The notes under the pieces were generated by a model that saw only the letters and a list, made by a program, of their open reading frames with translations, was not told the origin of the DNA and made no database searches. The translations under genes and the position numbers were made by a program. A stretch of 37,179 nucleotides of DNA from Octopus bimaculoides (Eukaryota). The DNA lies in contig NC_068983.1 in assembly GCF_001194135.2 (NCBI RefSeq), positions 88,991,464 through 89,028,642 of the forward strand, given 5' to 3'. Positions 1,641-30,103 of this stretch are shown in pieces; position 1 is the stretch's first letter; each line of letters starts with the position of its first letter.

Positions 1641-1848
1641 TCTTACTGTCACTTCACTTCTAGCACACAGCTCCACACTATACTAAACCCTGCTTATAAT
1701 GAGTATCACCAAGGTACTGGTTGGGAATTTATTACCTAAATCATATAGTTATTGCTGAAAGTGAAGTTAATGCTAACAGCATTACAATAAAAGTTGCATT
1801 ACCTATTGTTATTAACATCATCATAGTTTCTCTGGGAATAAAAGAACT

Positions 1849-1885
1849 TTATTGTTTTAAATTGTTCAAAAATGTTTTCTCTGGA
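1849..1885 (-). CDS. Candidate terminal coding exon of the FAM227-like gene after a U12-type AC acceptor
   Basis: Minus strand TTTCCTTAATGTCTTAC| resembles a U12 branch site plus AC. The phase-2 join gives T-PEKTFLNNLKQ*, and AATAAA lies downstream (plus 1728-1733). An alternative AG acceptor 5 nt further would give an open 78 nt exon 1880-1803 ending at GTAATG. Confidence 0.35.
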
Positions 1886-2976
1886 GTAAGACATTAAGGA
1901 AAGGAACGGTAGAAAGGTGTGAAATAAGCCTGAAAGGATAAGAAACAGATTTTGTAGCATTTATACCATGATTGTTAATACATTAGCAATCTGGCAGACA
2001 TCTAATAAATAAGCTACAGACTTTTAAATATATTCAACTTTGTAGATATTTGTGATTAAAAGATGCATAAAAGGCTACTATATATGTTGAAGCTATACCA
2101 TCATAGAAAGATAGATATGAGATCAATAATTATAATGAACCTACATAATTCTTTACAATTAGTTATCAATTAGTATGCAACACTGTAATTGATTAGAGCA
2201 CAAAATGTTCTTTTAATAAATTTAGGATTTTACCCTAAAGTCCAACAAAATAAAATTAAATAAATGATTCACATCTGCAGTTCATTCTTGACAGATCTAG
2301 ACTGTTAGAAATTTCCTGATCATTCCAGTATTGCTCAAGATGCTGAATAGATCTGCTGGTTAAAACCAATACTTTCAAAATACCCTTTATGTGATCCAGA
2401 CACTCAAAAAATTCAATAATCAATGTAGATTTTCAAAGATTCAGACAGTCAATAATCAGCCAAAAGAATCAGTGGATGGGAAGATTAATCCAAACCAAGA
2501 TTAAATTGGTCTCCAACATAGAAGCACAAAGGCTGAAGAATCAAGATACTCAAATCATTTTCCTTATTACAAACGTCCACAGAAATTAATCAGCCACAGT
2601 TCTTCTTGAAGAATTAAAATATAAAGTGAACACAGTAATTTCCTTTATTCACTGTATGGAATGCAATTTGAATCTCATCAAATTCAAGAGATTGACAGAA
2701 AGTGTTCTTCTTTTTAACACTCACTGCTAGTAATTTTATATTCATCAGATTTGTAATATCAGAGCCACTGTGCAGTTTATTTTATAAAACATAAGTAAGA
2801 GCAAGATTAAACAAAAAGACCATGAATTCAAACCTTGTTAGAACCTTCATATAATATGCCAATTCTTTCAGTCTGTCAAGCAGCTGCAAAATAAGTCTCT
2901 TCATTCTTAATTCATTGTCAAATATAAAAATGAGCACAGTTTACAAGTTACAGTTTCAGGAGTCAATGCACATGTT

Positions 2977-2979
<3 letters not shown>

Positions 2980-3067
<88 letters not shown>
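2980..3067. repeat. (GT)n microsatellite
   Basis: Perfect dinucleotide run seen directly. Confidence 0.99.
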
Positions 3068-3069
<2 letters not shown>

Positions 3070-3074
3070 TTGTG

Positions 3075-3490
3075 CATGGGTGTGTGGTTAAGAAGCTTGC
3101 TTCCCAACCACATGATTTTGGGTTCAGTCCCACAACACAACTCCTTGGGCAAGAGTCTCCTACTATAGCCTCAGGTCAACTCAAGCCTTGTGAGTTGGAT
3201 TTTATTTATGGACACTGAAAGAAGTCTGTTGCATGGGCATGAGTAAGGATGTTTGTATGTGTTTGTGCATCCTTGTCTAGACATAATCTGACGTTTGTAA
3301 ATGAGCATCATTGTCAAACAAACATGATTGTTTGTTTCCAGTCTTCAGTGAAAAATATGTTTAACAATGTGAAAATATTTTCTTGTTTGGAAACAGGTGA
3401 GGGTATGCAACAGAAAGGACATCTGGTCATAGAAAATCTGCCTCAACAAATTCCATCTGATCCATGCAAACATGAAAAAGTGGACATAAT
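3075..3490 (+). mobile_element. tRNA-derived SINE with RTE-like 3' tail
   Basis: Head GTGTGGTTAAGAAGCTTGCTTCCCAACCAC..GGTTCAGTCCCAC (A/B-box-like), then CCTTGGGCAAG core-like segment. The tail AAGGACATCTGG..AGAAAATCTGCC..CCATGCAAACATGAAAAAGTGGAC resembles the RTE 3' end at 11990-12115. Confidence 0.8.
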
Positions 3491-3617
3491 ATTTTGCTGC
3501 TGCCACTGCTGATGCACACATGCACATATCTATATACACACATATGTATATATATTCATGTACACATGGGTGTTGGCATGAATGGCATTGCATACATGAG
3601 TCTTATTACACACTGAA

Positions 3618-5140
3618 CTACATGAATGCTTTACATATTTTGACAGTGTCTTTGATAACTTGTAGCTGTAATCTCTTGACTAAGTATTATCTTTCTGGCT
3701 TTGTGAAATCCACTTTCTCAAGATTGATGCTGAGGCAGTTCTGTGTGGCTTCTTTTCTCAAATAAAGACCATTGTGGCTGGTCTGTTGTGCTTGCAGTTT
3801 ATTGAAGTCTTGACAGGGACATTCTATCAATATTTTTTCAAATTATGTGCGGTTATCCCCCCCCCCCCCACCAATCACTGTACTTTTGTATAGTTGTCTC
3901 CTCAGGATTATCTTTCCTCCATATTTCATTAGATAATGCTCTAGCCACTACATCATGTCTCATAGTTAGGTAATATTAGGAGAATATTTTCAGATAGCTA
4001 TTTATGATATGAGTAGCATCTTCAATTGTTGATTCCACAGAACCTGCATCAGACGTCACAAGTAAATGATTTACCTGCAACCTTATCCCTTTTGTACATC
4101 AAGTATTTTGAGGCTGTGTCCTACTTCTGAATTGCAAAACCATATCCTTCAAAATGAGAACCAATATCTGGGTTGTTAGTCCCAGGATAGACTACTTTAG
4201 TTGCCAATGTTGCTGTCACATTGAATCCTACAGGAAATATAGCCATGCATGCAGCCTCTCTTTTGATAAGTTGTTGAAGCAGTGCTGTGCAACTTCTCTG
4301 AAGCTCCTTTTCACTTTTATGATGTTATCATGTATACAGACTTGATTATTGGCAGGACTTCAATATTTGGTAGTTAGTAGATGCTGTTGAAGGGATGTAA
4401 TATCACATTAAATAATAGTTGGTGTTGATGTTAAACCTCTGCCACCTTGTTTACATTTCAAGAATAGGTAGTCTACATCTGTTGATCTGGAAAATCCTGG
4501 TATGGATTAACAACATCAATAGCCCAGATCTCATCCAGCATCCACTCAAGTAGCCTGAATATTAATAGTAGCATTGGTACAGCAAACATATTGAGGGCTA
4601 ATCAATTCATTGCATGTGGAAAGTTCCAAGGACCATATTTTCTTTATTCTGGTGTTGTATTCCCTAATTATGTGGTTCTTTCCATCAAATGAAATGTTTT
4701 CAGATATCAGAGAAATAGTCAGGCCATTGATAGTAATATTTGTAGATGGACTTGTATATCTTCCTCACTTAACAACCATATAAGAATATTTATCCTAGCC
4801 AACTCCATTCCTATACTTTTTAAGAATATCAAAACTAGGCCATGTTCCTTTATACCATCCATATTCTTGGCATATATTTTCAGATCATCCACAAAGAAGT
4901 AATGTGTCAGGTAGTAACACATTGCATTGTTAGGTAGTAACAAAGAAGTAATGTGTTTCTATCTTCCTGTGGACCAATTGCTTATCCTTTAGATTTCCTG
5001 AACAAAAAGGACTGGGAGGTTACTGAAAGTATAAACAGCATCATGAGGAGATGGTCACTTTGAAATACCTCCATAATACTGTATCCTATCAATAAAAGTA
5101 TGACCTCTTCCTGTCTTGAAATTCAAAATGGTGGCCTAGG
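3618..5140 (-). mobile_element. Decayed R4/Dong-type (REL-endonuclease) non-LTR retrotransposon, RT to C-terminus
   Basis: Minus strand gives, in order: GIFQSDHL..LF (GIFQGDSLSPLLF), HYFFVDDLKIYAK, REYNTRIKKIWS..FAVP, KQGGRGL, SHFEGYGFAIQ, CRFC...THII...RHDVVA (CCHC region), KHNRP (REL motif) and KDTVKICKAFM* (stop 3618-3620). Confidence 0.85.
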
Positions 5141-5676
5141 AGGAAGTCAAGTTGTCTATGGCTATAATAATAGTATCTGGAATTATCTATGTATTATACC
5201 TACCTGCCTATTTGTCTACCTGTCTTTCTACAAATACACACATGGTACGTATATATACACAAAGAAAAAAGACTACTGACTGTAAGATTTAAGTTATGAA
5301 TTACTGTCCCATACGGATGTGAGTTTGAACTTCAATAGTACAATGCAAAACACTATATAAACACAGAAGAGTAGTGTAATTTGGTGTTATGTGATACAAG
5401 TAGGAATCATTAAACATGATAATATCAGTATACTGTAATGTTATTTGGTGTAGTATAGTAACATGTAGCATACTGGAATGTCAAGATATGTGATGTGTAT
5501 AGGGCAATATGCATACTTTAGAAGGGTATTTTCAGCTGTAGTATAATATACACTATAAGGAGAACATTATTGCTTTATGGTCAGGTGCTAGAAAATGGTA
5601 CCAAATATTATGTGATATCAACTATAATTTTTCTTTACTTATAGATAATCTACCAAAATTTTAAAAAAAAGGATAT

Positions 5677-5837
5677 GTCTTCTCAGTTCTTTGAAGGCGT
5701 TGAATAATTTGATTGGATGGTATCATATAAATTGCTGACATCTTCCTGTTGTACATACAGTAGTTGACCAATGGACATTGGCTGTATAAATCAAACTTCA
5801 CCTTCTCCAGGTGCAGGTTGTCAACTGCTACTTCTGG
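5677..5837 (-). CDS. FAM227B: FAM227-family exon (161 nt, phase 0 to 2): PEVAVDNLHLEKVKFDLYSQCPLVNYCMYNRKMSAIYMIPSNQIIQRLQRTEK
   Basis: Acceptor TTTGTAG| and open frame. EKVKFDLYSQCPLVNY resembles the FAM227 motif RVLFN..GQSPL..YYL. Ends at ATATCCTT (U12 donor). Phase matches the upstream exon 20823-20681. The A versus B paralogue call is not secure. Confidence 0.7.
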
Positions 5838-5903
5838 CTACAAATTATAACAGAAGATAACCTAAGTCTTTACCTATTAGTATTGACAGTAATAATTTTA
5901 TAT

Positions 5904-5906
<3 letters not shown>

Positions 5907-5954
<48 letters not shown>

Positions 5955-5974
5955 ACTCACTCACTCTCTCTCTC
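5907..5974. repeat. (CT)n microsatellite with (CACT) interruption
   Basis: Seen directly. Confidence 0.99.
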
Positions 5975-7731: not shown

Positions 7732-8062
7732 ATTCTTTTATTCTTTTACTTGTTTCAATTATTTGACTGTGACCATGCTGGAGCACCACCTTGAAAGATT
7801 TTAATTGCATAAATTGACCCTAGGACTCATTTTTTAAGCTTAGTACTTATTCTATCAGTCTCTTTTGCTGAACCACTAAGTTATGGGGATGTAAACACAC
7901 CAACACTGATTGTCAAGCAGTGATGAGGGGACAAACACAGACACAAAAACACACACGTCTATATATATAACAGGCTTCTTTCAGTTTCTATCTACCAAAT
8001 CCACTCACAAGGCTTTGGTTAGCCCAAGGCTATAGTGGAAGACACTTGCTCAAGGTTCCACA
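7732..8062 (-). mobile_element. SINE, same head family as 3075 but with a different tail (..GAAACAAGTAAAAGAATAAAAGAAT)
   Basis: Minus strand CCTTGAGCAAGTGTCTTCCACTATAGCCTTGGGCTAACCAAAGCCTTGTGAGTGGATTTGGTAGA matches the 3075 and 27135 copies; A-rich tandem tail. Confidence 0.8.
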
Positions 8063-10884: not shown

Positions 10885-12134
10885 CTGTATATGGACACAT
10901 AAGAGGTGCAGCAACATCAAAGGCAGGTTAACTAGCAAGTTAGTTTTTGTTTGTGGCAGATGTTCAGGTGCAATAAAGACTGTAAACAAACAGGAAACAA
11001 CTTCTATCTCATTCCAGGGTGAAAAACTAGAGGTAGTCGATAGCTTCCGCTATCTGGGCGACCAAGTTAGTAGTGGGGGTGGGTGCGCTGAAAGTGTAGC
11101 TGCTAGAATAAGAATAGCCTGGGCAAAGTTTAGAGAGCTCTTACCCCTGCTGGTGACAAAGGGACTCTCACTCAGAGTAAAAGGCAGACTGTATGACGCA
11201 TGCGTACGAACAACCATGCTACATGGCAGTGAAACATGGGCTGTAANNNNNNNNNNNNNNNNNNNNNNNNNNNNNNNNNNNNNNNNNNNNNNNNNNNNNN
11301 NNNNNNNNNNNNNNNNNNNNNNNNNNNNNNNNNNNNNNNNNNNNNNNNNNNNNNNNNNNNNNNNNNNNNNNNNNNNNNNNNNNNNNNNNNNNNNNNNNNN
11401 NNNNNNNNNNNNNNNNNNNNNNNNNNNNNNNNNNNNNNNNNNNNNNNNNNNNNNNNNNNNNNNNNNNNNNNNNNNNNNNNNNNNNNNNNNNNNNNNNNNN
11501 NNNNNNNNNNNNNNNNNNNNNNNNNNNNNNNNNNNNNNNNNNNNNNNNNNNNNNNNNNNNNNNNNNNNNNNNNNNNNNNNNNNNNNNNNNNNNNNNNNNN
11601 NNNNNNNNNNNNNNNNNNNNNNNNNNNNNNNNNNNNNNNNNNNNNNNNNNNNNNNNNNNNNNNNNNNNNNNNNNNNNNNNNNNNNNNNNNNNNNNNNNNN
11701 NNNNNNNNNNNNNNNNNNNNNNNNNNNNNNNNNNNNNNNNNNNNNNNNNNNNNNNNNNNNNNNNNNNNNNNNNNNNNNNNNNNNNNNNNNNNNNNNNNNN
11801 NNNNNNNNNNNNNNNNNNNNNNNNNNNNNNNNNNNNNNNNNNNNNNGTAGGATTTTCGAGCGAGATCGTTGCCAGCGCCCCTGGACTGGCTTGTGCGGGT
11901 GGCACATAAAAGACACCATTTCGAGCGTGGCTGTTTTCGTGCGGGTGACACGTAAAAGCACCCACTACACTCTCTGAGTGGTTGGCGCTAGGAAGGGCAT
12001 CCAGCTGTAGAAACTCTGCCAAATCAGACTGGAGCCTGGTGTTGCCATCCGGTTTCACCAGTCCTCAGTCAAATCGTCCAACCCATGCTAGCATGGAAAG
12101 CGGACGTTAAACGATGATGATGATGATGATGATG
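10885..12134 (+). mobile_element. Young 5'-truncated RTE LINE (C-terminal ORF, 3' UTR, (GAT)n tail) spanning the 600-N gap
   Basis: Open frame WTHKRCSNIKGRL..FVCGRC...GEKLEVVDSFRYLGD...RIRIAWAKFRELLPLL..KGRLYDACVRTTMLHGSETWAV. CpGs intact; tail CCATGCTAGCATGGAAAGCGGACGTTAAACGATGATG. Confidence 0.9.
11247..11846. other. Assembly gap (600 N)
   Basis: Run of N. Confidence 1.
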
Positions 12135-16500: not shown

Positions 16501-18749
16501 TCGAGCCACTGCCATGCTTTACAGTGGGAACGGTGTAATGAGGCTGGTGAGCAGTGCCTTTTTTCTGCCAAACATAGCGTTTCCTAATTTTTCCAAATAA
16601 CTTGACTTTGGTCTCATCTGACCAAAAAATCTTTTGCCACATGGTCATGGAATCATTAATGTGACTTTTGTCAAAGCTTGCTTGTGCATAGGCTTCAGAA
16701 GGGGCTTTTTTCTAGCTACCCTTCCTTGCAGGCCAGACTGCTGCAATACTCTGGAAATTGTAGATGCATGGACATCTGTCCCAGTACTGGAAACTGAAGC
16801 TTTCAAGTCTTCCAGTGTTGCACTAGGATTGGAGGTTGCCTCCCGGACCAATTCTGACTTTGCTCTTCTGGTAAGTTTGCTCGGTCTCCCAGACCTTGGT
16901 AGGGTAGCAGTGGTTTTGTGCACTAACCACTTCTAACCTATAGTTTTAACAGTGCTTAGGGGCAATTCTAAAGTTTTTGCAATTTTTTATAGCCATTATT
17001 TTCATTGTACTTTTGAATAATAAGGTTTTTAAGTTCTTGAGACAGAGGTTTGCCCGTTTTCCTTCCCGAGTTGGACACCTTGTGTTTACAGTCAGAGTCC
17101 AAAGACCAACATACCAAAAAACCATGTGGTGAATGATTTTGTAGGCAGTTAAATCACTTTATATAGCAAAATAATAGACTGGCCAAGTTTGTTTGTTATT
17201 GTAGAACACACATGTCACCTTTGATTGTTTTGGATTGTATACATCAATGACAAACTACATGATAACACAGTATAATATCGGGAGGGGGTGTAGACTTTTA
17301 CAAAGACATTTTTATAAGTTATATGATTTTAAGAATCAGTGTGAAATGTTTAAAATGTAATTTTTATATCAAAGGAAAGTGTGATGGATCTGCTTATTAT
17401 TTAACAATCATTGGAATTGAAAAAATGTGTTGTTCCCTGTTAAATCATACAAAATATATAAATTTTCAAAAGGAGTGTAGACTTTTGCAAGGCACTGTAT
17501 AACCACATCAACGTGGCTGAGTTGGATGTTGAGCTGAAATGGGTGACTCTGGCCCTGAGATGTGGGCCACACTCTATCGAAATCAACCAATTTGGCTACT
17601 GTGCTTGGATGGGTGGGATCAGTGATCACCAATGAAAGGAGGGTTCAAACCAAAGGTTTTGCAAAGATGTTAGTAAAACACTGCTCAGGGGTTCTGTGAG
17701 AACTAGCTGCTGAATTTGGTTTGAAGCTGAGCATGGTCTTTGTACCCTCAGGAAGGAATAAGGCAGACATTCAAACCAGGGTGAAAAAGGCCTGGTTGTC
17801 AATACTGGAAGATTCAGAGCAGGGGATAGCTGCAGTGTGTCAGCCATAATATGGATGTGGATAGAACCCTGTATCTTACCAGGAAAGCTGACAGGGAAAG
17901 TTACTGGGCAGAGCATTCAAAAAGTGGTCGGGAGCTGTGACAGGTGTCAATACATCAACCCTGCTCCATGTGTGCACAAGCTGGGAAACATCTCAGTAGA
18001 GTAAAACTGGAGATGATTGGCAGTGGATGTGACACACTACTGGCAGGGGACATCTCTCTTGGTAGTCAACTGCAGACCAGGCCGGATGATGATATGGAAG
18101 GAAATTAAGACGGGCACTGCAGATGAAGTTGCACATATCCTGAATGAGATATTCCAGGACCAGGGCCCTGTAGATGAACTGCTGATGGATAATGGCACTG
18201 CATTTCCTTCAGAGATGCTGAAGGAGATGCTCGATAAGTGGAATGTGCACCGCTTCTTCTGAGTGGCAAACAGGCTGAGTAGAAATGGGATTGTGGAAAG
18301 ATACCATCACATGATCAAGGCCATGGTGAAGAGGGGATATATTTCACCACTGGAAGCAGTATTTTGTTACAATATGTCACCCCAATCAGGACAGACCAAG
18401 GAGTCTGTGCCACAGAGTGATATTGAGGTATAAATAGCAACACCCATGTACAGTATCACAAAACTCTGTGGAAGAGAGAGAGAAAGCCTGCTTTTGTGCA
18501 GGCTGGAGATGAAGTCTGGGTCAAGCTCTCAAAGGCATACTGCACATCTCAGTGGGACAGAGAGACAGTGGCAGCTGTTAATTCAAAAAAATAATGTTTC
18601 TGTGGATGGAATGCTGTGTCATGCCTTGGATGTTTAGTAGAATTGTTGCTTCATCAGATGACTAAGGTGGAGGAGAGGAAGCAGGCAGCACTCCATCCCT
18701 ACAGAGATTACAGGTGCCCAGGTGGATGGCAGATTTCAACATGGAGTGA
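13593..18749 (+). pseudogene. Gypsy gag-pol remnant (interrupted by Tc1 at 15838-17497)
   Basis: gag MAAKIRISSDVIRPFCGVGDVTTWIHK; protease AFMDMGCT; RT KVRLVLDFQELN, LNSAPKVI, NSYTDDILV; RNase H ..EDAAWL*KADD/YNHINVAELD; integrase AVDVTHY, DELLMDNGTAF, GIVERYH; tail VPRWMADFNME*. Many stops and frameshifts. Confidence 0.9.
15838..17497 (-). mobile_element. Tc1-family DNA transposon (DD34E) with ~214 bp IR/DR terminal repeats
   Basis: TA flanks at 15836-37 and 17498-99. TIRs 15838-16051 and 17284-17497 start CAGTGCCTTGCAAAA and each carry two GCAAAA.TCTACACCCC direct repeats. Minus-strand transposase ~17066-16070: [47 protein letters not shown] (34 spacing, catalytic E changed to K). Confidence 0.95.
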
Positions 18750-20680: not shown

Positions 20681-20823
20681 CTCACAAGTTTCCTTCTGTT
20701 TTGGAGTATCTTTTGTCACAGACAATCTAGGAACCTCTTTCATTGGAGATACCTTGAAAAGAGATTTGTTCTCCTGATGTTTTTGTAGATCCTCTAAATC
20801 TTGCATGGTCAAGTCTAGTTTAA
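20681..20823 (-). CDS. Exon of the FAM227-like gene (143 nt, phase 1 to 0): (V)KLDLTMQDLEDLQKHQENKSLFKVSPMKEVPRLSVTKDTPKQKETCE
   Basis: Strong acceptor TTTTATTTTATTAG|, donor GAG|GTAACA, open frame, and phases compatible with both neighbouring exons. Confidence 0.75.
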
Positions 20824-21954
20824 CTAATAAAATAAAACAGGTGTTAACTTTTATCAGATGTAATAGACAGGAGTAACACTAGCTCTATGGATGCTGACTG
20901 AATTGATGGTTACATTGTAGTATTAAGATAATGGCTGAAGGGGTGATGAGAGAGAAAAAAAGGAATTATATTATGAAGTTCAGCTAGTAGATATGGTTAA
21001 TACAATAGTTAACTTAGTGGTTGGATAGCTATTTAAAATAGTGGCATGCTTCAAATAATTCAAGAACAATTAAGGTGACAGTTATTAGATTAAAAAGACT
21101 AGCAGAGTTTTATTTTAATGTTGATGGAACTATATTCAGCTTAAACATCTGCATGTCAATGTCTACAAGAAAGAATGTTGGTGAGAGGAAGTCATAATTT
21201 TATCTAAATGCTTACAAAAGAGTGAACTCCACTAAAGACACCCAAGTATTAGGTGGAGGTGTTAAACTGGAATTTTATTAAGTTGAGTGACTGCATAGAA
21301 GCTCTCTTGTTAGCTTGTGGATATAGTGACTTTTATTGTGTCACTGAAGTCAGTCTTGATCAAGCAGACCCATGACACATAGGTAATTAGCCAAATGATT
21401 ATGTTCAACATAGAAACATCTGCAATTCTGGATATGTCATAATTTGCTTAGTTGAGGACCATACTACACAACTCCAGCATGAAATAATAAAGTGTATGTG
21501 GTACAGTGTTGCAGTCTGGGCATACTGTGTATCTTCATTGTCTACTCTTTTTTATCTTAATCAACTGTTTAAAATCAATATGCAATACTCACAGATAGGG
21601 AATTGTGGTCTTCTATAAAGCATCAACAGGTCATGAAAGATCACTTAATTGTAGTACAAGGGCTCTTCCAACCCACATTCTATCAACATTCTCACACTTC
21701 AAAGTTTATCTCCCTCATTTTTTCTACACCACATTTATAACTTGATAACAATTACTTGAATCACACACACTCTTATGCAGTTGATATCATATCCATTCTC
21801 CAATAAAATTTCATATACAAGCATATCCAGATGATGCCTAATAACTTTATGTCAAACCTGTACTATTATATAAAACAAAAAGTATGAAAAGATTCCCCAA
21901 TAGGAACATCAAAAGCGTAGACACAATGTTTACATACTGAGGAAACTCATAATA

Positions 21955-23216
21955 TTGAGTCAACCCCTAAATAATGTGGTTTTTTTCAATTGTATGAACT
22001 AAAAGTTGGAGGGGGACAGGATAAACCACCTGCACCAACTTGCTATAAAAGCAAGTAGTAATTTTTCTTTGTCCTTATTCTAAGTGCAAGTTTTGAAGAG
22101 TGCAGTTCAATTTTAACAGTTATTTTTTCAAAGCTATAATGGAAGTGACAAAGGAGCACATTTGGCATATTTTGCTTTATGAGTTCAATAAAGGCAACGA
22201 CGCAACAGAAAGTGTGAGGAATATTAATGCAGTATATGGGGATTGGACAATAAGTGTAAGCCAGTGTCAATGGTGGTTCCAAAATTCCGAGCCAGAAACT
22301 ACAGCTTAGAAGATGAGCCTCATCCTGTAGCGCTCGATGAGGATGTCCTGCAAACCCTGGTGGAACAAAATCCCATTGTAACTGTTGAGGAACTAGCAGA
22401 GAAGCTTGGATTGGGTCATTCAACCATTCATTGACACCTGCATGCCATTGGAAAAGTCAGCAAATTGGGTCAATGGGTTCCTCACAAACTTTCCAAGTCT
22501 AATTGCATGTAGAGAGTGGATGTGTGCTCTTGTTTGCTGTCATATTTCATGAATGAACCTTTTTTGGACCAAATAGTAACTGGTGATGGGAAATAGGTTC
22601 CCTATAAAAATGTCAAGCACCGAAAACAGTGGGTAGGGAAACGAGAAACACCGGCACCCCAGGCTAAAGAAAGTTTTCACCCATGTAAGGTGTTGTTATC
22701 TGTTTGGTGGGATATGAAAGGTTTAGTCCACTTTGAACTTTTAAACCCAAACCAAACGATAACAAAGGAGATCTACAGCAAGCAGCTTGAGTGGTTTAAG
22801 TCAACATGAAGAAAAACGACCATCTTTGGTTTCAAGATAAAATGTGTTCTTCCATCAGGATAATGCTTGGCCACATACAGTGAGGATAACATCCCAAAGG
22901 CTGGAGCAGTTTGAATGGGAAACAATGTCCCACCCACCATATTCACCAGACATTGCCCCATCTGATTATCATTTATTCTGCAGTCTTCAAAATCATTTGG
23001 ATGGAAAAAACACACACAGAACAGTACTGGAGGAGTATTTTGCATCACAGACAAGTGAATTTTGGAAGAGGGGTCTTGCAAGTCTACCGGATAGATGGAA
23101 AAGCATTGTAGAAAACGAAGGAGAGTATATTTTAAATTAAAAAAAAAATTTGTTTATCTTAATTTTGAAAAATAAAAGAAGTATAAAAAAACTACATCAT
23201 TTATGGGATGACCCAA
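21955..23216 (+). mobile_element. Full-length decayed mariner (DD34D)
   Basis: TA-flanked TIRs TTGAGTCAACCCCTAAATAATG / CATTTATGGGATGACCCAA. Transposase 22139-23140: MEVTKEHIWHILLYEF, IVTGDG, FHQDNAWPH..YSPDIAPSDYHLF with 34 spacing; frameshifted. Confidence 0.95.
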
Positions 23217-23327
23217 TATTATGTCCTTTCTCTACCTAAACAACGCATAAGTAAAATCTTCAAACTTTTCACAAACATCAGGTTTTACAGTCTCTTACGA
23301 TTTTCTTGACAACTTCACATCTATTAT

Positions 23328-23377
23328 TTAGCTAAGACTGCGACCAAAAAACTGACTTTTCTCTTTAAGAGCAAAAC
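23328..23377 (-). CDS. Possible alternative terminal exon: (G)FALKEKSQFFGRSLS*
   Basis: Acceptor TTCTTTTGCTTTAG|G in phase 1 and an in-frame stop after 15 codons. No homology support. Confidence 0.25.
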
Positions 23378-23614
23378 CTAAAGCAAAAGAACCACAAGTA
23401 TTATAGTTGTATTAAAATATCTAGGCCAGTGCACCTAATATGCACACATTCTGAATAAATATATATATATATATATATATAAATGACAGGATATTCTGAG
23501 ACCTTTTGTGAAACTGCTACCAATTTACAGAGAATTTTTTTTAACAGCAGCAGGCTTGTGTAATAGCTAGATAATTACTATAATCACAGTAATGTAAAAT
23601 ATACATTTAGTTAC

Positions 23615-23734
23615 CAGGTTTATTAGACAAAATAGAGTGAGTTAGCATCTCAGCGATAGTCTCAGTTCTCTCTCCAGTCAACTTAGCCATCTTCTCTCGT
23701 TCTTTATTACCAGCTCCTGGCTGGGGCGTGATTC
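23615..23734 (-). CDS. FAM227B: Exon of the FAM227-like gene (120 nt, phase 1 to 1): (G)ITPQPGAGNKEREKMAKLTGERTETIAEMLTHSILSNKP
   Basis: Acceptor TATTTTCAG|, donor CTG|GTAACT, open frame. Continues KWTTG-ITPQPG, like FAM227 LW.SG-L.PQ.G. Confidence 0.8.
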
Positions 23735-25450
23735 CTGAAAATACATTTTAAAAAGAAACAAAGCTCAATACAAAAGAACCTAGCAAACGATTCTTAATTT
23801 CAGCATGATTAGAGGCACTGAAATAAGAAGATAATAAGCAGGAACTGATAACAACAGGAGTAGACAATAGCATGAATAAATAATAATAGGGGTAGTTGCC
23901 TATGGTAGAAAGGCTAGAAATATAGATACAAAACATGAAAATAAATTTTAAAAGCATAATGAAGTAAAAATGAAACTGAAAATTTCGTACTCAACTGTTT
24001 AGTAGGTAGATAAATGGAATGAAACATTTCCCTTTAGCTTTCCAAATACCCAGAAGTCTAGTATATAAGGGGCTTATCACAAGATAAATTATGATTATGC
24101 ATTGTTATATTATCCAGACAGAGAAGCTACTAACATGGAGCAGATGTCCCCAGAGAATATAGTAGAAATTTAGTAAAATCTTTAACTATGTATTTCTATC
24201 AATAACACCTGCAAAATGTGGTACAGAATTTCTAACTTGTAATAACGTGTTCCTCACGAAAACATCCAGAATATGTGGGACAAATTCATATCAATTGTAA
24301 CTATGGATTTCTATCAACACAAACCACAATAAAAGAAGTAAATGTAATTGTAAACATAAATTTTCTTTAATTTCTTTTTAATGCTTTTTTTTTTAATATT
24401 AAAAAATGGGTTGTGCTCATAATCAATGAAGGTTTCTTAAAGTGAAGTATGAGAAAGATACAATGACATTAGTATAGTTAATGTTGTTAAAATCTTAAGG
24501 TTTGTAAAGGCTGGAGAAAAAAAATTATTAAGTAAGAGAGTCCCAGGGTGATGTAACTCAAGAATAATTTGTTTTATGAAATCTTTAGTTTAGGCACCAA
24601 AGGAGGAAGACAGTGGCAAATGAACTGAAGCAAATTTTAATGAAATGACTTCTATCACTTTCCAAGAATGAAATAGAGAGGTATCATGATGATAACGGAG
24701 TAAATATTAATATGTTATTCCTAAGTATTTGATTAGTGACCTCTCTTTCATAGGTAGAATCTTTACAGCCCTGGAAAGAATGCTTTGCAGTATTTGTTTC
24801 ACTTCTTGACACTATGTTCAAATCCTACAAAGTTCAATTTTGCGTCTAATTTTACCAAGATTAGCAAATAAATTATCAATTCAAGGTGGTAACACAGCAA
24901 AATTACTAGAGTATGAGACAAGATGCTTTGCAGTATCAATTCCCTCTCTTTGTGCTTTGACTGTGAAACTAGCAACAATATTGGTGCCAAGCCATATCAG
25001 CCTTACATTTCTTTTATATAAAATTGGTGGTATGAAGAGAGGAGGCTTTCATGCATGAGTTAATTGCTAGTCTTCCATAAAACACATTGCTCAAGCATAC
25101 ATCTTCGAGAGGAGCTTTCCACATGTAGATTAATAATCTCATGAAATGTGCAAAAAACTCAGATATATATCACTTTCAGAAGCAAAATAACTTTATAGGT
25201 AAAGCATTGGACTACCAGTTAACAGCTTTAGAATTCAAGTGCAAAGATAGTAAACATGTTTGGATAGTAAATGTAATTTTACACTCCTCTATCCCCTACC
25301 AGTAGCGAAATCACCTAAGAATGTTTCTGGAATATCTCCTTGCCTTTCTACATTCTTTGCCATGAGTTTGTTAAAACAAGTCTAACCAGAGATGTTATTC
25401 AGTAACAAAAAAAAAAAAGACAATAAAAGTAGTTACAAATGATTACTTAC

Positions 25451-25577
25451 CAGTGGTCCATTTAGTAATATAAGAAAATATATACTGTTTAAAGTTGTCA
25501 TCGAAATACTGGTGGTGTGTCCGTAAGCCATCAAAAAAGGCCACATAAGTAGCTTGAGAGAGGGCTTTGGGAATTTT
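25451..25577 (-). CDS. FAM227B: FAM227-family (FWWh domain C-terminal part) exon (127 nt, phase 0 to 1): KIPKALSQATYVAFFDGLRTHHQYFDDNFKQYIFSYITKWTT
   Basis: Acceptor CATTGCAG|, donor CTG|GTAAGT. The pattern P..LSQA.Y.AF......F.D.FK..I...I..W.TG matches recalled FAM227A/B sequence (P.CLAQAIY..F...F......F.DEFK......I.LW.SG). Confidence 0.85.
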
Positions 25578-25620
25578 CTGCAATGTATATCAAGGAATTA
25601 AAGTCAAGTGGAAACTTAAC

Positions 25621-25815
25621 ATTCATCATCATCATTTAATATCTGTTTTCCATGCTGGCATGGGTTGGACGGTTTTGACAGGAGCTGTCAAGCTGGAGAG
25701 CTACAGCAGGCTCCATTATCTGTTTTGGCATGGTTTCTATGGCTGGATACCCTTCCAAGCACCAACCACTTTACAGAGTGTACTGGGTGCTTTTTATGTG
25801 GCACCAGTACCAGCA
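25621..25815 (-). mobile_element. RTE-type 3' tail fragment
   Basis: CATCATCATCATTTAATATCTGTTTTCCATGCTGGCATGGGTTGGACG..GGGTGCTTTTTATGTGGCACC matches 7223-7420. Confidence 0.85.
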
Positions 25816-25931
25816 CTTAATATTAATCTATAAAGAAAATAAAAGTTAAAATATAGAAAGAGACACATGCAGACACATACATACATACACATGTATCAGT
25901 GTGTGTGTGTATATATATGTATGTATGTGTA

Positions 25932-26026
25932 NNNNNNNNNNNNNNNNNNNNNNNNNNNNNNNNNNNNNNNNNNNNNNNNNNNNNNNNNNNNNNNNNNNNN
26001 NNNNNNNNNNNNNNNNNNNNNNNNNN
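25932..26026. other. Assembly gap (95 N) within TA/CA-type microsatellite
   Basis: Run of N flanked by simple repeats. Confidence 1.
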
Positions 26027-26058
<32 letters not shown>

Positions 26059-26063
26059 ATCCA

Positions 26064-26254
26064 AAATATATAGTATTATATATCCATCACAGCTGACCTT
26101 ACCAATCAGTTTCATGCAAGGAAACCAATGGATTATATAACCTTAGGCTCATCAGAGCATAAGATTATATAATAATACTTAATGCTCCATTGGTTTCCTT
26201 GCGTGAAACCAATTAGTAAGATCAGCTATGATAGATATATAATACTATATATTT
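26064..26254. repeat. Imperfect inverted repeat, MITE-like (~69 bp arms)
   Basis: Arms 26064-26132 and 26186-26254 share GCAAGGAAACCAATGGA and its reverse complement. Confidence 0.8.
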
Positions 26255-27134
26255 CAGATAATATACCCACTCTAGTGACAGATGTACGAGTGTATCTTTT
26301 CCTTGACTTATGGTCTCTTAGATGACACACACACACATATATAAGTTGTGTACCTGCTATTAATAAAAGGAAATTAAACAATTTTAGAAATTATGTAAGT
26401 GATTCTAATAATACTAGTAATTTTGTTTGTTAAAAACACATTTCAATCTAACATGAATTATATCACCGATTCTGTATCTCTTCCCAATAATAACTTTAAT
26501 AATAGTTCAACCAATAATTCTTCACTATTATATTGGAACCACAGCATCAAAATTCAAGTTGAGATGGGGCAGCCACTTACATTCCTTTAATAACAGGCAC
26601 AGATCATATATTTTATTAGCAAAGTTTATTTGGGATTTGAAGGATAGAAATATTCATTACTCTATTTTCTAGACAATTATAAGGACTGAACTTCCATATA
26701 AAGGAGGGTGAGCAGTTGTAAATTACGTTGCATGTGGCACTTGAAATTCTAAGATGTAAATCTGAATTAATTAACAAATGTAATGCGTTGTTAATACATT
26801 GGCCACACCAGATTAATAAAACCTTTCTCAGGATTCCATTTAACTAACCTATGTATTGTATTATACTATAAAACTTCATATAAATTTCTGTTGATTACAC
26901 TTCATTTCTCATTGTTATTATCATCCTTCTTTGATTTTTTTCCATACTTATTGTTCAACAGCAATTTTATCTTTTGTAATTCTCCAGAACTTTAATTTTA
27001 CATTTATTTTCTCGTTCCCAATTATCTTATCACTTCCCACTATAATTTTTCATTTTCCTGTATAACTATTTACTAGTTCCATTTAATACAGTGATAATTT
27101 TTTTTATCATTAATCATTTGTCTTTTACTTCTTT

Positions 27135-27455
27135 CAATCATTGGACAGAGATATGCTTGGACAATGCATTGAACAAATCAACCGTCTGTTTATTTTTTAT
27201 GACTTATCCTATCAGTCTCTTTTACTGAACTGCTAAGTCACAGGGATGTAAATAAACTAACACTGGTTATCAAATGGCGTGAGGGACAAACACAAACACA
27301 CCTTCACATACATACATACATACATATATATGATAGGCATCCACACAGTTTCCATCAACCAAATTCACTCACAAAGCATTGGTTGGTCTGGGGCTATTAC
27401 TGAAGAAACTTGTCCAAGATGCTGCACAGTGGAATTGAACCTGAAACAGCTGTGC
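27135..27455 (-). mobile_element. SINE, same family as 7732-8062
   Basis: Minus strand CAGGTTCAATTCCACTGTGCAGCATCTTGGACAAG..GCTTTGTGAGTGAATTTGGTTGATGGAAACTG, internal (TATG)n, then GACTTAGCAGTTCAGTAAAAGAGACTGATAG. Confidence 0.8.
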
Positions 27456-27499
27456 CTGTACCTAATATTTATATATCTCTTAAAGTATTGAGTTGGAAG

Positions 27500-27665
27500 A
27501 ATCATTAACACTGGACAAAATGCTTAGCAACATTTCATTCATCTTTACATTCTGAGTTCAAATTCCACTAAGGTTGACTTTGTTATTCATCCTCTCAGGG
27601 TTAATGTAACTGACTTAGCCCCCTCCATTCAAAATTTCAGGCCTTGTGCCTATAGTAGAAAAGAA
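27500..27665 (+). mobile_element. Nin-type SINE fragment
   Basis: GAGTTCAAATTCCACTAAGGTTGACTTTGTTATTCATCCTCTCAGGG matches the fuller copy at 34655-34878; internal deletion. Confidence 0.65.
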
Positions 27666-27981
27666 TGTTTATATATCTTAATTTTTTTTATATTATGTTA
27701 TATTGTATTATTGTATTATATATATTTCACTATGATTTGACTTACTATTTCTACTCTAACACAAAAGTTATCAACCCCTTTAATTCTATGTCTTGATATA
27801 TTTCTATCTTTCCATGCTTCATGATCCTCTTCTTGTATTTTTTTTATCCCCCTTTCTCACTCCTAATTTTCTTACTATTTTTTCTTATCATTCTAGTTTC
27901 TTTGATGTTACTCCTGATGTTACTTTACAAAATTACTGATCCTCTGTAGGTGTCATCAAGTTTGCTACTACCTTGGGTTAA

Positions 27982-28022
27982 ATACTGTCCTTGATCAATT
28001 ATTGATTGATCAAGGACAGTAT
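27982..28022. repeat. Perfect 18 bp stem / 5 nt loop palindrome
   Basis: ATACTGTCCTTGATCAAT-TATTG-ATTGATCAAGGACAGTAT. Confidence 0.95.
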
Positions 28023-28254
28023 ATATGCTATAACATTGTAAGCCATTCCCATGTATAGTATTTATAAGGGTATTCGTTCTATTGGAAGTGTATTACATCA
28101 TTTCCAACATCATGGTGAGATGACAATTGGATGTCATTTAATACTGATTCCAGCTTTATATTTACTTAAGTAACCTATCCGTTATTGAAATAGGCGTAAC
28201 TGGATAATAAATGCAATACCAATATCTTCATTTTTTTAATTTATTTTATATATA

Positions 28255-29610
28255 GGAGCACATGGTGGAGACGTAAACGAACCTCCTCCCCACCTTTAGA
28301 AAGACATTTTTTTTATAGAATCCCACATTTTTGGCTATGGAGATTACAATTCTGAAAGAAAAATTTTTCACTTTTTCTGGAAATTTTTTTTTTTTTTTGC
28401 AAAATACATAGAAAAATATGGAGATTATGATTCTGAAAACAATTGTTTGTAAAATTTCAATTTAAAAAAAAAAATGCCCCAACCTCTCCCCTTCCCTCCC
28501 GATTCTGAGGCCTTGGCCTTCAAGCAGGCTATCCACATGCTAGAAATAACAGCCAAATCTTACAAAACTGCGATAATATAAGGAAAGAAATATGTAATCA
28601 GTCTACTCACTTTTCTGAAAAGATTTCTTTCAGAGAAATTTCCCACAGTAATATGACAAAGTGAAATAAAAGAGTTCATTTTTTTTTTTTTCTACAACTG
28701 AAACCTCCACCATGTGTGCCAGTGAAATTTATGGGGGATAAACTTCAGCAATGTGTTTGAGAAATTTTTCTTTGCTGTAAATCCATACATTTCTTGATAC
28801 ATAGATTTGTCGATGTGAGACCATTTCATATCGCCTGATGATCCAGTGACATACTTCAACCATCTTTTGATTCAGGACCGATAGGCCTCAATGTGGTTTG
28901 TGCAAGCACTGGTTTCAGGGTCAACAAAGTTCTGTGAATGGTTTACCGTTTGGTGAATATAGCCAAGTTGCTGTAAATTTCTATAGCTGGCCCATTTATC
29001 AGTATGAATTGCAGTACCGGGCAATACATTTCTTATTATCACAGTTTCCAGTGTTGCTGTACATGCTGTAAAAATCCTTTCTTCACAGTGGTGTCATAAT
29101 GCCCAACAACCCATGTTTGATGGCCTAGTCTCACAACGTTGTCATATCCTCCCTCTTTTTGTCATATTACTTATGAGAAATTTCTCTGAAAGAAATCTTT
29201 GCAGAAAGGTGAGTAGATTGATTACATATTTCTTTCATGATATTATTGCACTTTTGTGAGATTTGGCTGTTATTTCTAGCATGTGGATAGTCTGCTTGAA
29301 GGCCAAGGCCATAGAATTGGGAGGGAAGGGGAAGGGTTAGGTTTTTTTTTTTTTTTTTGTAAAATTGAAATTTTACAAACAATTTTATTTCAGAATCATA
29401 ATCACTGTATTTTTCTGCATATTTCACAAAAAAAAATTTCCGGAAATAGTGAAAAATGAAGAAGGGGTGAGGGAATGAAATTTTGATGTTGCAATTTTTG
29501 AAAATTTTTTTTCAGAATTGGAATCTTCATAGCTGAAAACATGGGATTCCGTAAAAACTTTTTTTTCTAAAGAGGTGGAAGGGTTCATTTACATCTCTGC
29601 CAAGTGCGCC
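28255..29610 (-). mobile_element. Merlin (IS1595-like DDE) transposon derivative with ~400-450 bp inverted arms
   Basis: Arms 28255-28660 and 29157-29610 begin GG(A/C)GCAC. The minus-strand core ~29110-28727 reads WVVGHYDT..KKGFLQHV..LPGTAIHTDKWASYRNLQQLGYIHQTVNHSQNFVDPETSACTNHIEAYRS*IK, the IS1595/ISXO2 motif set. No 8-9 bp TSD found. Confidence 0.85.
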
Positions 29611-29617
29611 AATAAAT

Positions 29618-29712
29618 GCTACTAATAGTTTCTTGCTGTGAAAGCATGTGTCTCGGCAGATTTTAATAATTTGCCTAGACATGTGTCTTTGCAGCAAGAC
29701 ACTATTAGTAGC
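29618..29712. repeat. Imperfect hairpin (~41 bp arms)
   Basis: GCTACTAATAGT.TCTTGCTG... pairs with ...CAGCAAGA.ACTATTAGTAGC. Confidence 0.8.
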
Positions 29713-30103
29713 TCTAGTCTCTATACTGTGTGCATTAGATGTATTTATCTCTCACTAGATGGAATACTTTCTTTATTGGTCTTACATTGACAGAGCAGTA
29801 AACTACATATATAAATTCATATGCATATATATATATAAATACACATACATGCACACATGTATATATACATTTACATATATATATATATACACACACACAC
29901 GTAATATGTATGTTAAGTCTTATAATATACTCCGGTTAGCTTATGATAATTTAGAACTTTTGGTAAATCTCATATTAAATCTCCTTAACTGTTTTTGCAC
30001 AGTGTTCTATGATATATAAAAAAAGAATGACGGATTTTATGAATTGGCTTCATTGTGTTATTTCTGATGTATAATTATGCTTATTTCTCAATTAGTCTTA
30101 TTA

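Follow-up and report, generated by a model that had tools for sequence, protein, structure and literature searches.

Transcript evidence for a minor-spliceosome AT-AC intron in FAM227B of Octopus bimaculoides

How does a gene continue past an exon whose open frame runs, with no GT donor in use, directly into ATATCCTTT, the 5' splice-site consensus of U12-type introns? The question is raised by a FAM227-like gene on the minus strand of a stretch of 37,179 nucleotides (nt) of Octopus bimaculoides DNA (RefSeq assembly GCF_001194135.2, contig NC_068983.1, positions 88,991,464 to 89,028,642 of the forward strand), hereafter the window. An original prediction, made from the letters of this stretch, had proposed that the exon is followed by a U12 intron with AT-AC termini. 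We found that the segment from 5676 to 1886 is, with a probability of about 95%, a minor-spliceosome AT-AC intron of O. bimaculoides FAM227B, as judged from transcripts, splice signals and conservation. The intron is already known: it is present in the RefSeq models of two octopus species and, by the comparisons given below, is orthologous to a U12 intron that is both catalogued and deeply conserved. All coordinates of FAM227B features are window positions on the minus strand (Table 1), and slashes mark splice boundaries.

The splice junction and its signals

RNA contigs were placed separately on the two sides of the intron (3100-5900 and 1260-2975) and linked through the sequences of their loose ends. 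The junction GAGAAGAC/TCCAGAG was found in contigs of eight RNA runs from four octopod species. Five of these runs (X15, X25, X26, X37 and X38) are from O. bimaculoides and join 5677 to 1885. For example, contigs of X15, X25 and X26 cover 5677-5839 and, past 5677, run into TCCAGAGAAAACATTTTTGAACAATTTAAA, the reverse complement of TTTAAATTGTTCAAAAATGTTTTCTCTGGA; these contigs also span 1801-1887 and carry exon sequence ...ATTATTCAACGCCTTCAAAGAACTGAGAAG past 1887. The junction was identical in X37 and X38, which belong to a separate study, and in a related octopod (organism C, X33). Two further related octopods showed ...AAC/TCCAGAGAAAATATTTTTGAAC (organism B, X36) and ...CC/TCCAGAGAAAACA (organism H, X34). 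RNA depth was zero in the intron beside the 5' splice site, and no contig from any RNA run examined showed read-through past 5677, use of a GT donor, or a downstream exon starting at 1880. At the DNA level, runs X1, X4, X5 and X9 gave one colinear contig over 5600-5900 with no loose end or joined form, and therefore the joined form exists as RNA only.

The signals at the two boundaries, which were judged by consensus matching, are those of the U12 class. The upstream exon ends at 5677 with ...AACTGAGAAGAC and the intron opens with ATATCCTTTTTTTT at 5676 (in a longer reading, ...CAAAGAACTGAGAAGAC up to 5677, then ATATCCTTTTTTTTAA), and 3.8 kilobases (kb) downstream the 3' boundary reads ...CCGTTCCTTTCCTTAATGTCTTAC/TCCAGAGAAAACATTTTTGAACAATTTAAAACAATAAAG.... 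After the branch-point sequence TTCCTTAAT only GTCTTAC follows up to 1886, without a polypyrimidine tract. The same architecture is known from intron F of P120/NOP2, the textbook AT-AC U12 intron, which has the 5' site ATATCCTTT and a TCCTTAAC-type branch box near a terminal AC and likewise lacks a polypyrimidine tract; that gene is unrelated to FAM227B. Taken singly, neither motif is rarer than chance in the 37-kb window: ATATCCTTT occurs once (0.73 copies expected), as does TTCCTTAAY (1.13 expected). As the motifs alone are at chance frequency, transcripts had to decide. Their placement does exceed chance, since they lie on the same strand and in the right order, one exactly where a transcribed exon's sole open frame ends and the other directly before the next transcribed exon.

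In terms of mechanism, the pre-mRNA is cut after ...GAGAAGAC and rejoined to TCCAGAG, with the removal of 3,791 nt that begin with ATATCCTTT and end with TTCCTTAATGTCTTAC. Following the established U12 pathway, the U11/U12 di-snRNP (a pair of small nuclear ribonucleoproteins) would recognise ATATCC and TTCCTTAAT together, U11 pairing with the former and U12 with the latter, and one of the two A residues in the TAAT of TTCCTTAAT would be bulged as the branch point. U6atac would take the place of U11 at the 5' splice site, and the first A and last C of the intron may interact, an interaction through which the nearby AC would be chosen over the AG five bases on. U12 introns that begin with A prefer a terminal C, and the ignored AG at 13 nt from the branch is consistent with this preference.

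Two observations concern the sequence beside the 5' splice site. The original prediction had stated that the exon 5837-5677 has no GT donor; none is used, although GT dinucleotides are present, including a good U2-like donor AAG/GTGAAG at 5802/5801 (motif 5796-5804, minus strand) that no contig uses. Besides, the DNA runs are polymorphic at 5662-5663, positions +14/+15 of the intron (T/A, where the T run that follows ATATCC ends), which lie outside the 9-nt core of the splice site.

Gene identity and conservation of the intron

The exon 5837-5677 encodes PEVAV...RLQRTEK and closes with AC, two bases that open a split codon; it contains the conserved ERVxF..SPL...RTE block, which a profile of 114 orthologues aligns at 20.8 bits. 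The C-terminal 152 residues alone yielded neither an FWWh domain in Pfam nor a homologue; the domain (PF14922) appeared once exon 25577-25451 was added, the product of this exon matching with E=2.9e-6 and 27.7 bits (cut-off 25). An exhaustive HMMER search returned a protein of 425 residues that matches the whole 195-residue query at 100% identity and ends in ...NNLKQ. This protein is XP_014779102.1, 'protein FAM227B isoform X2 [Octopus bimaculoides]', ending ...RTEKTPEKTFLNNLKQ. Its C-terminus encodes the junction and therefore RefSeq already uses the AT-AC junction, so that the gene, which had been taken for a hidden one, was annotated as FAM227B beforehand. RefSeq isoform X3 has the same C-terminus as isoform X2, and the RefSeq model of O. 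sinensis, ending ...RTEKTPEKIFLNKIKL, also uses the AC junction. Every other intron of the gene model in the window is of the GT-AG type.

At the O. sinensis locus the boundaries read GAGAAGAC/ATATCCTTTTTTTT and TTCCTTTCCTTAATGTCTTAC/TCCAGAG, both matching O. bimaculoides, around an intron of 5,044 nt. Intron-to-intron comparison by blastn showed that the two octopus introns are colinear at 86-94% identity, with four extra blocks in O. sinensis, and that their splice signals, about 25 nt, are unchanged. With a profile search, 113 orthologues of FAM227B were recovered across Metazoa, and four non-octopus loci were read in genomic DNA (Table 1). In Lottia, Lingula and Branchiostoma the aligned position reads CC/ATATCCTTT...AC/. 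Like the O. sinensis intron, these three introns share with O. bimaculoides the 5' site /ATATCCTTT, a TCCTTAAC-like box, the terminal AC, phase 2 and a location just past the conserved RTE residues; they are shorter, at 335, 157 and 994 nt, respectively, against 3.8-5.0 kb in the octopuses. In the FAM227B-like gene of Actinia, the intron has the same position and phase and a CCTTAAC box 11 nt before its 3' end, but is a U12-like GT-AG intron (CA/GTATCC...CCTTAAC-N10-AG/), whose 5' site GTATCCGAA leaves the consensus after position 6. The four non-octopus introns are all in phase 2, with the split codon four residues after RTE, and the downstream exon begins T-CCA in octopus, Lottia and amphioxus and T-TTG in Lingula. 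Judged by position, phase and signals, the octopus intron is orthologous to a U12 intron that FAM227B carries at the same codon phase in other molluscs, a brachiopod, amphioxus and a sea anemone. A U12 intron at the aligned position of FAM227 orthologues, the check that had been suggested at the outset, is thus found in O. sinensis, Lottia, Lingula, Branchiostoma and Actinia.

The minor-intron catalogues agree with these findings. FAM227A and FAM227B are both listed as minor-intron genes in the supplementary tables of Olthof et al. 2019 (PMC6717393); nothing relevant on FAM227 as a minor or U12 intron gene was found in the main texts of the literature. These tables give for human FAM227B the 5' site ACC/ATATCCTTT and branch CATTCCTTAATA in an intron of 31,951 nt (chr15:49335497-49367447, ENST00000299338; Minor Intron Database), and for FAM227A the 5' sites CCC/ATATCCTTG in mouse and CCT/GTATCCTTC in human (PMC6717393). 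The octopus counterparts, in the same gene family, are GAC/ATATCCTTT and TTTCCTTAATGT. The exon bases of the published human and mouse 12-mers are compatible with a phase-2 split of a Pro or Leu codon; those of human FAM227B (ACC) fit a split ..L-P codon as in the alligator tail KLPYPF. From the published 12-mers and the alligator and coelacanth models we infer that human FAM227B and human and mouse FAM227A carry the same intron. As in octopus, the human FAM227B intron is long, repeat-rich and near the 3' end of the coding region, although it far exceeds the 3,791 nt of O. bimaculoides. Human FAM227A, like Actinia, differs from octopus in having GT-AG termini, which is the familiar switch of subtype within one orthologous U12 intron. 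Molluscs are reported to be comparatively rich in minor introns, and a pan-eukaryotic survey covers O. sinensis by name (PMC10639083). From cnidarians to vertebrates, a minor intron has been retained at a single codon position, with lengths between 157 nt and about 32 kb and with repeats accumulating inside it.

The gene neighbourhood also offered an observation: a GALK2-like gene of galactokinase type (GalKase_gal_bdg, GHMP_kinases) lies tail to tail with FAM227B in Lottia (L002 12906-15444) and in a tortoise (Gopherus), where an FGF gene is nested inside FAM227B. The arrangement of the GALK2-like gene and FAM227B looks like an ancient conserved gene order.

The downstream exon and alternative readings

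Several points weigh against the AT-AC reading. AC closes both the exon and the intron, the contigs of the two sides overlap by these 2 bases, and the cut could formally lie 0-2 nt upstream. Among the cut options in O. bimaculoides, known splice termini are given only by AT...AC; in organism H the exon ends in CC, not AC, and therefore the downstream exon must begin with TCCAG, which removes the ambiguity. The branch lies 8 nt (second A) or 9 nt (first A) from the end of the intron, below the 10-11 nt of the four orthologues measured, and the AG at 13 nt is ignored; this short spacing is the one slightly unusual feature of the octopus intron. The split codon is Thr, one residue after RTE in O. 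bimaculoides, as against four residues in the other loci (Pro in Lottia, Lingula and Branchiostoma), so that positional homology assumes a deletion of three codons. Finally, the RNA evidence consists of assembled contigs, which lose rare isoforms, and a minor AT-AG or intron-retained form is possible.

With the AT-AC junction, a Thr codon is completed (AC/T) and the exon 1885-1803 encodes (T)PEKTFLNNLKQ in the frame ...RLQRTEK-T-PEKTFLNNLKQ, 11 further codons leading to the stop TAA at 1851-1849, which sits 46 nt before the next exon junction. In O. sinensis a TAG stop occupies the same codon. Octopus FAM227B thus stops 12 codons past the junction, whereas the FAM227B proteins of other animals, vertebrates among them, continue for about 100 residues. 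The original prediction had placed the terminal AC (1887-1886), the CAG (1883-1881) and an AATAAA (1853-1848) correctly, and had read a short in-frame exon before the AATAAA. The exon is indeed short and in frame, but it is not terminal: RNA contigs pass the AATAAA to a GT donor at 1802-1801 and continue, via a GT-AG intron, into an exon beyond the window that starts GTTGAAAATTTGAAGATCAGAATGGCGATTGC (GTTGAAAATTTGAAG...), and no assembled contig ends at the AATAAA. Neither the window nor the 2 kb at the gene end in O. sinensis contains this further exon.

A first alternative uses the same U12 5' site with the CAG five bases on as its main acceptor (AT-AG, exon from 1880), giving the tail ...RTEKTENIFEQFKTIKFFYSQRNYDDVNNNRLKI and a stop. 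Its AG, 13 nt from the branch A, is nearer to the spacing of the orthologues, and its frame (SRENIFEQ...NNNR) is open through the whole 83-nt exon in O. bimaculoides, O. vulgaris and O. sinensis. Substitution in this exon is uneven as well. Between O. bimaculoides and O. sinensis (L001 85913-85995), 6 of the 7 differences fall in the first 37 nt, which are coding in the AC frame, whereas the last 46 nt, past the stop, hold only one (Fisher p=0.04), a pattern that could reflect splicing enhancers, a second coding frame or chance. We nevertheless consider AT-AG as the main form very unlikely. TCCAG is kept in every spliced contig of the eight RNA runs and four species, and the AC junction is the one built into the RefSeq models of two species. 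The junction at 1880, which the original prediction had kept as a fallback together with an acceptor outside the window, was in no contig, and neither was such a distant acceptor. Homology favours neither tail: a profile of the C-termini of 114 orthologues aligns octopus only up to RTE, with the same score for every tail. Matches of the tails noticed by eye (PEKTF with PGPTY and SQRNYDD with SKEYQK) had no support from this profile and were dropped.

The AT-AC reading leaves one thread to follow, namely the octopus-specific early stop together with an open and better-conserved alternative frame of the 83-nt exon. Since the AC 8 nt from the branch is used, the AG at 13 nt is ignored and the other frame is open and better conserved after the stop, a switch of the C-terminus could occur. 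We regard as improbable, if worth stating, both forms of this idea: regulated selection of either AC or AG, which lie five bases from each other, as a switch of the C-terminus, or a truncation in the octopus lineage fixed at an ancient minor intron.

It is highly improbable that the main product is unspliced and read past 5677 to a TAA (...RTEKTYPFF and stop). Such a product is present in protein databases, as the older UniProt entry A0A0L8GPR9 ends ...RTEKTYPFF, the translation of AC-ATATCCTTTTTTTTAA reading into the intron. As the main form it is refuted by the RNA contigs, whose depth at 5676 is zero in all runs and which continue with the far exon. In addition, a YPF or YPL tail is found in models of unrelated species exactly where ATATCCTT follows the exon, and this coincidence marks it as the signature of a gene predictor unable to use AT-AC. 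Tails in PYPF or PYPL, translated from ATATCCTT, occur in models from alligator, coelacanth, Littorina, Nucella and Lottia. Similarly, two ab-initio models of O. vulgaris avoid the AT-AC intron; one skips both flanking exons, and the other has an invented GT-AG intron, with the branch box read as protein (...FLSLMSYSRENIFEQ...). The value of this transcript-supported AT-AC minor intron lies mostly in annotation quality: ends in ...PYPF or ...PYPL (TYPFF in the octopus UniProt entry) are a simple text signature of missed AT-AC introns. Models with such ends were cut short by a predictor with no means of using ATATCCTT, and their true C-terminus lies beyond the minor intron.

Removal of the AT-AC intron by the major (U2-type) spliceosome is hardly credible. 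Rare U2-type AT-AC introns do exist. They have been tabulated as a class (PMC7367187). However, the 5' site here is ATATCCTTT, not the ATAAGT-like form of that class, a perfect TTCCTTAAT is separated from the 3' end by 7 nt that hold no polypyrimidine tract, and the orthologues carry the same U12 signals. Finally, although a 2-nt AC repeat flanks the junction, an artefact of this microhomology (template switching by reverse transcriptase or mis-assembly) or a processed retrocopy has a negligible chance of being correct, given a junction that is shared, at depths reaching 193, by eight runs covering several studies and four species and is unchanged in organism H, where the microhomology is absent (CC, not AC), DNA runs with the unspliced form only, and an intron conserved across phyla.

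Intron interior and other features of the window

Table 1. Coordinates of the FAM227B exons, splice signals and repeats in the window, and of orthologous introns in other animals
Feature	Position	Strand	Evidence or remarks
FAM227B exon, C-terminal third of FWWh domain	25451-25577	-	RNA contig piece 25450-25577; GT-AG borders
FAM227B exon	23615-23734	-	GT-AG both sides; RNA contig pieces; joint 20823 to 23615 in four runs
FAM227B exon	20681-20823	-	Donor GAG/GTAACA; RNA contigs; loose end at 5839 maps here
Exon upstream of minor intron	5677-5837	-	RNA contigs cover exactly 5677-5839; single open frame
U12-type AT-AC intron	1886-5676	-	3,791 nt, phase 2; RNA junction 5677/1885
U12 5' splice site ATATCCTTT	5668-5676	-	9/9 consensus positions; directly at exon end
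U12 branch-point sequence TTCCTTAAT	1893-1901	-	Fits TTCCTTRAY
Terminal AC (3' splice site)	1886-1887	-	Spliced contigs read ...GAC, then TCCAGAG
CAG, possible AT-AG acceptor, unused	1881-1883	-	Five bases into exon; contigs keep TCCAG
83-nt exon after minor intron	1803-1885	-	RNA contig pieces 1801-1887; then U2 donor AG/GTAATG
AATAAA overlapping stop codon	1848-1853	-	Contigs of six runs extend past it as far as 1803 and are then spliced
(GT)53 microsatellite	2980-3086	+	Tandem Repeats Finder; inside minor intron
Dispersed SINE-like repeat (SINE, short interspersed element)	3077-3230		Many unrelated high-depth RNA contigs match 3100-3133
Block in O. bimaculoides intron only	3230-3821		Unaligned in O. 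sinensis; intron-to-intron blastn
Degenerate open frames, ...FVDDLKIYAKN...IGME... by eye	4549-4958	-	Aligns with O. sinensis at 89%
(TC)34 run	5907-5974		
Lottia gigantea intron	L002 9432-9766		335 nt; 5' AAAATGCC/ATATCCTTTA; 3' TTCCTTTACTATGTATTAC/TCCATCAGG
Lingula anatina intron	L005 5329-5485		157 nt; 5' CATCTGCC/ATATCCTTTC; 3' TTTCTTAACTGAGTCCAC/TTTGCCGG
Branchiostoma lanceolatum intron	L003 13288-14281		994 nt; 5' AGGCTGCC/ATATCCTTTT; 3' TACCTTAACCACTCTCAC/TCCACCTGG
Actinia tenebrosa intron	L004 9812-10524		713 nt; 5' AAACAACA/GTATCCGAAA; 3' AACCTTAACAATACCACAG/AACTCC

The intron had been described as stuffed with retroelements, among them an R4/Dong relic. Its (GT)n run and a dispersed repeat were recovered. 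Further copies of the repeat at 3077-3230 were found at 7969-8055 in the window and, inverted, in the O. sinensis intron; ARAGORN and Rfam found no tRNA or Rfam head in it. The block at 3230-3821 would be a lineage-specific insertion or deletion. The motif at 4549-4958 looks like a remnant of a reverse transcriptase, and the R4/Dong label is unconfirmed, as Pfam found no reverse transcriptase or other retroelement domain in the intron frames at E up to 5. The interior is therefore better described as repeat-bearing and fast-drifting, with lineage-specific insertions, and the earlier wording was overstated. A low-depth RNA contig (X25, depth 2.3, one mismatch) lies at 4978-5152 inside the minor intron, adjoining the reverse-transcriptase-like stretch, and could be pre-mRNA or a transcript of another copy of the repeat.

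At the 5' side of the gene, upstream exons with the FWW motif were not found in 25578-29800 and did not stand out in the frames of the minus strand as far as 37179. Two upstream structures were observed. Contigs of X25 and X26 join 23733 to 23995 across a GT-AG intron of 261 nt and run to 24277 and 24308, respectively; the X15 contig instead joins 23734 to exon 25451-25577. These probably represent alternative 5' exons, or retained sequence matching several RefSeq isoforms. The assembly has gaps (N runs) at 11247-11846 and 25932-26026. The 15-kb intron between exons 20681 and 5837 contains transposon debris, including a helix-turn-helix domain of a Tc1/mariner transposase (PF01498, E=6.7e-18) and a fragment resembling an integrase core (PF00665, 27.7 bits, below the cut-off), at 16645-16923 (-) and 18017-18262 (+).

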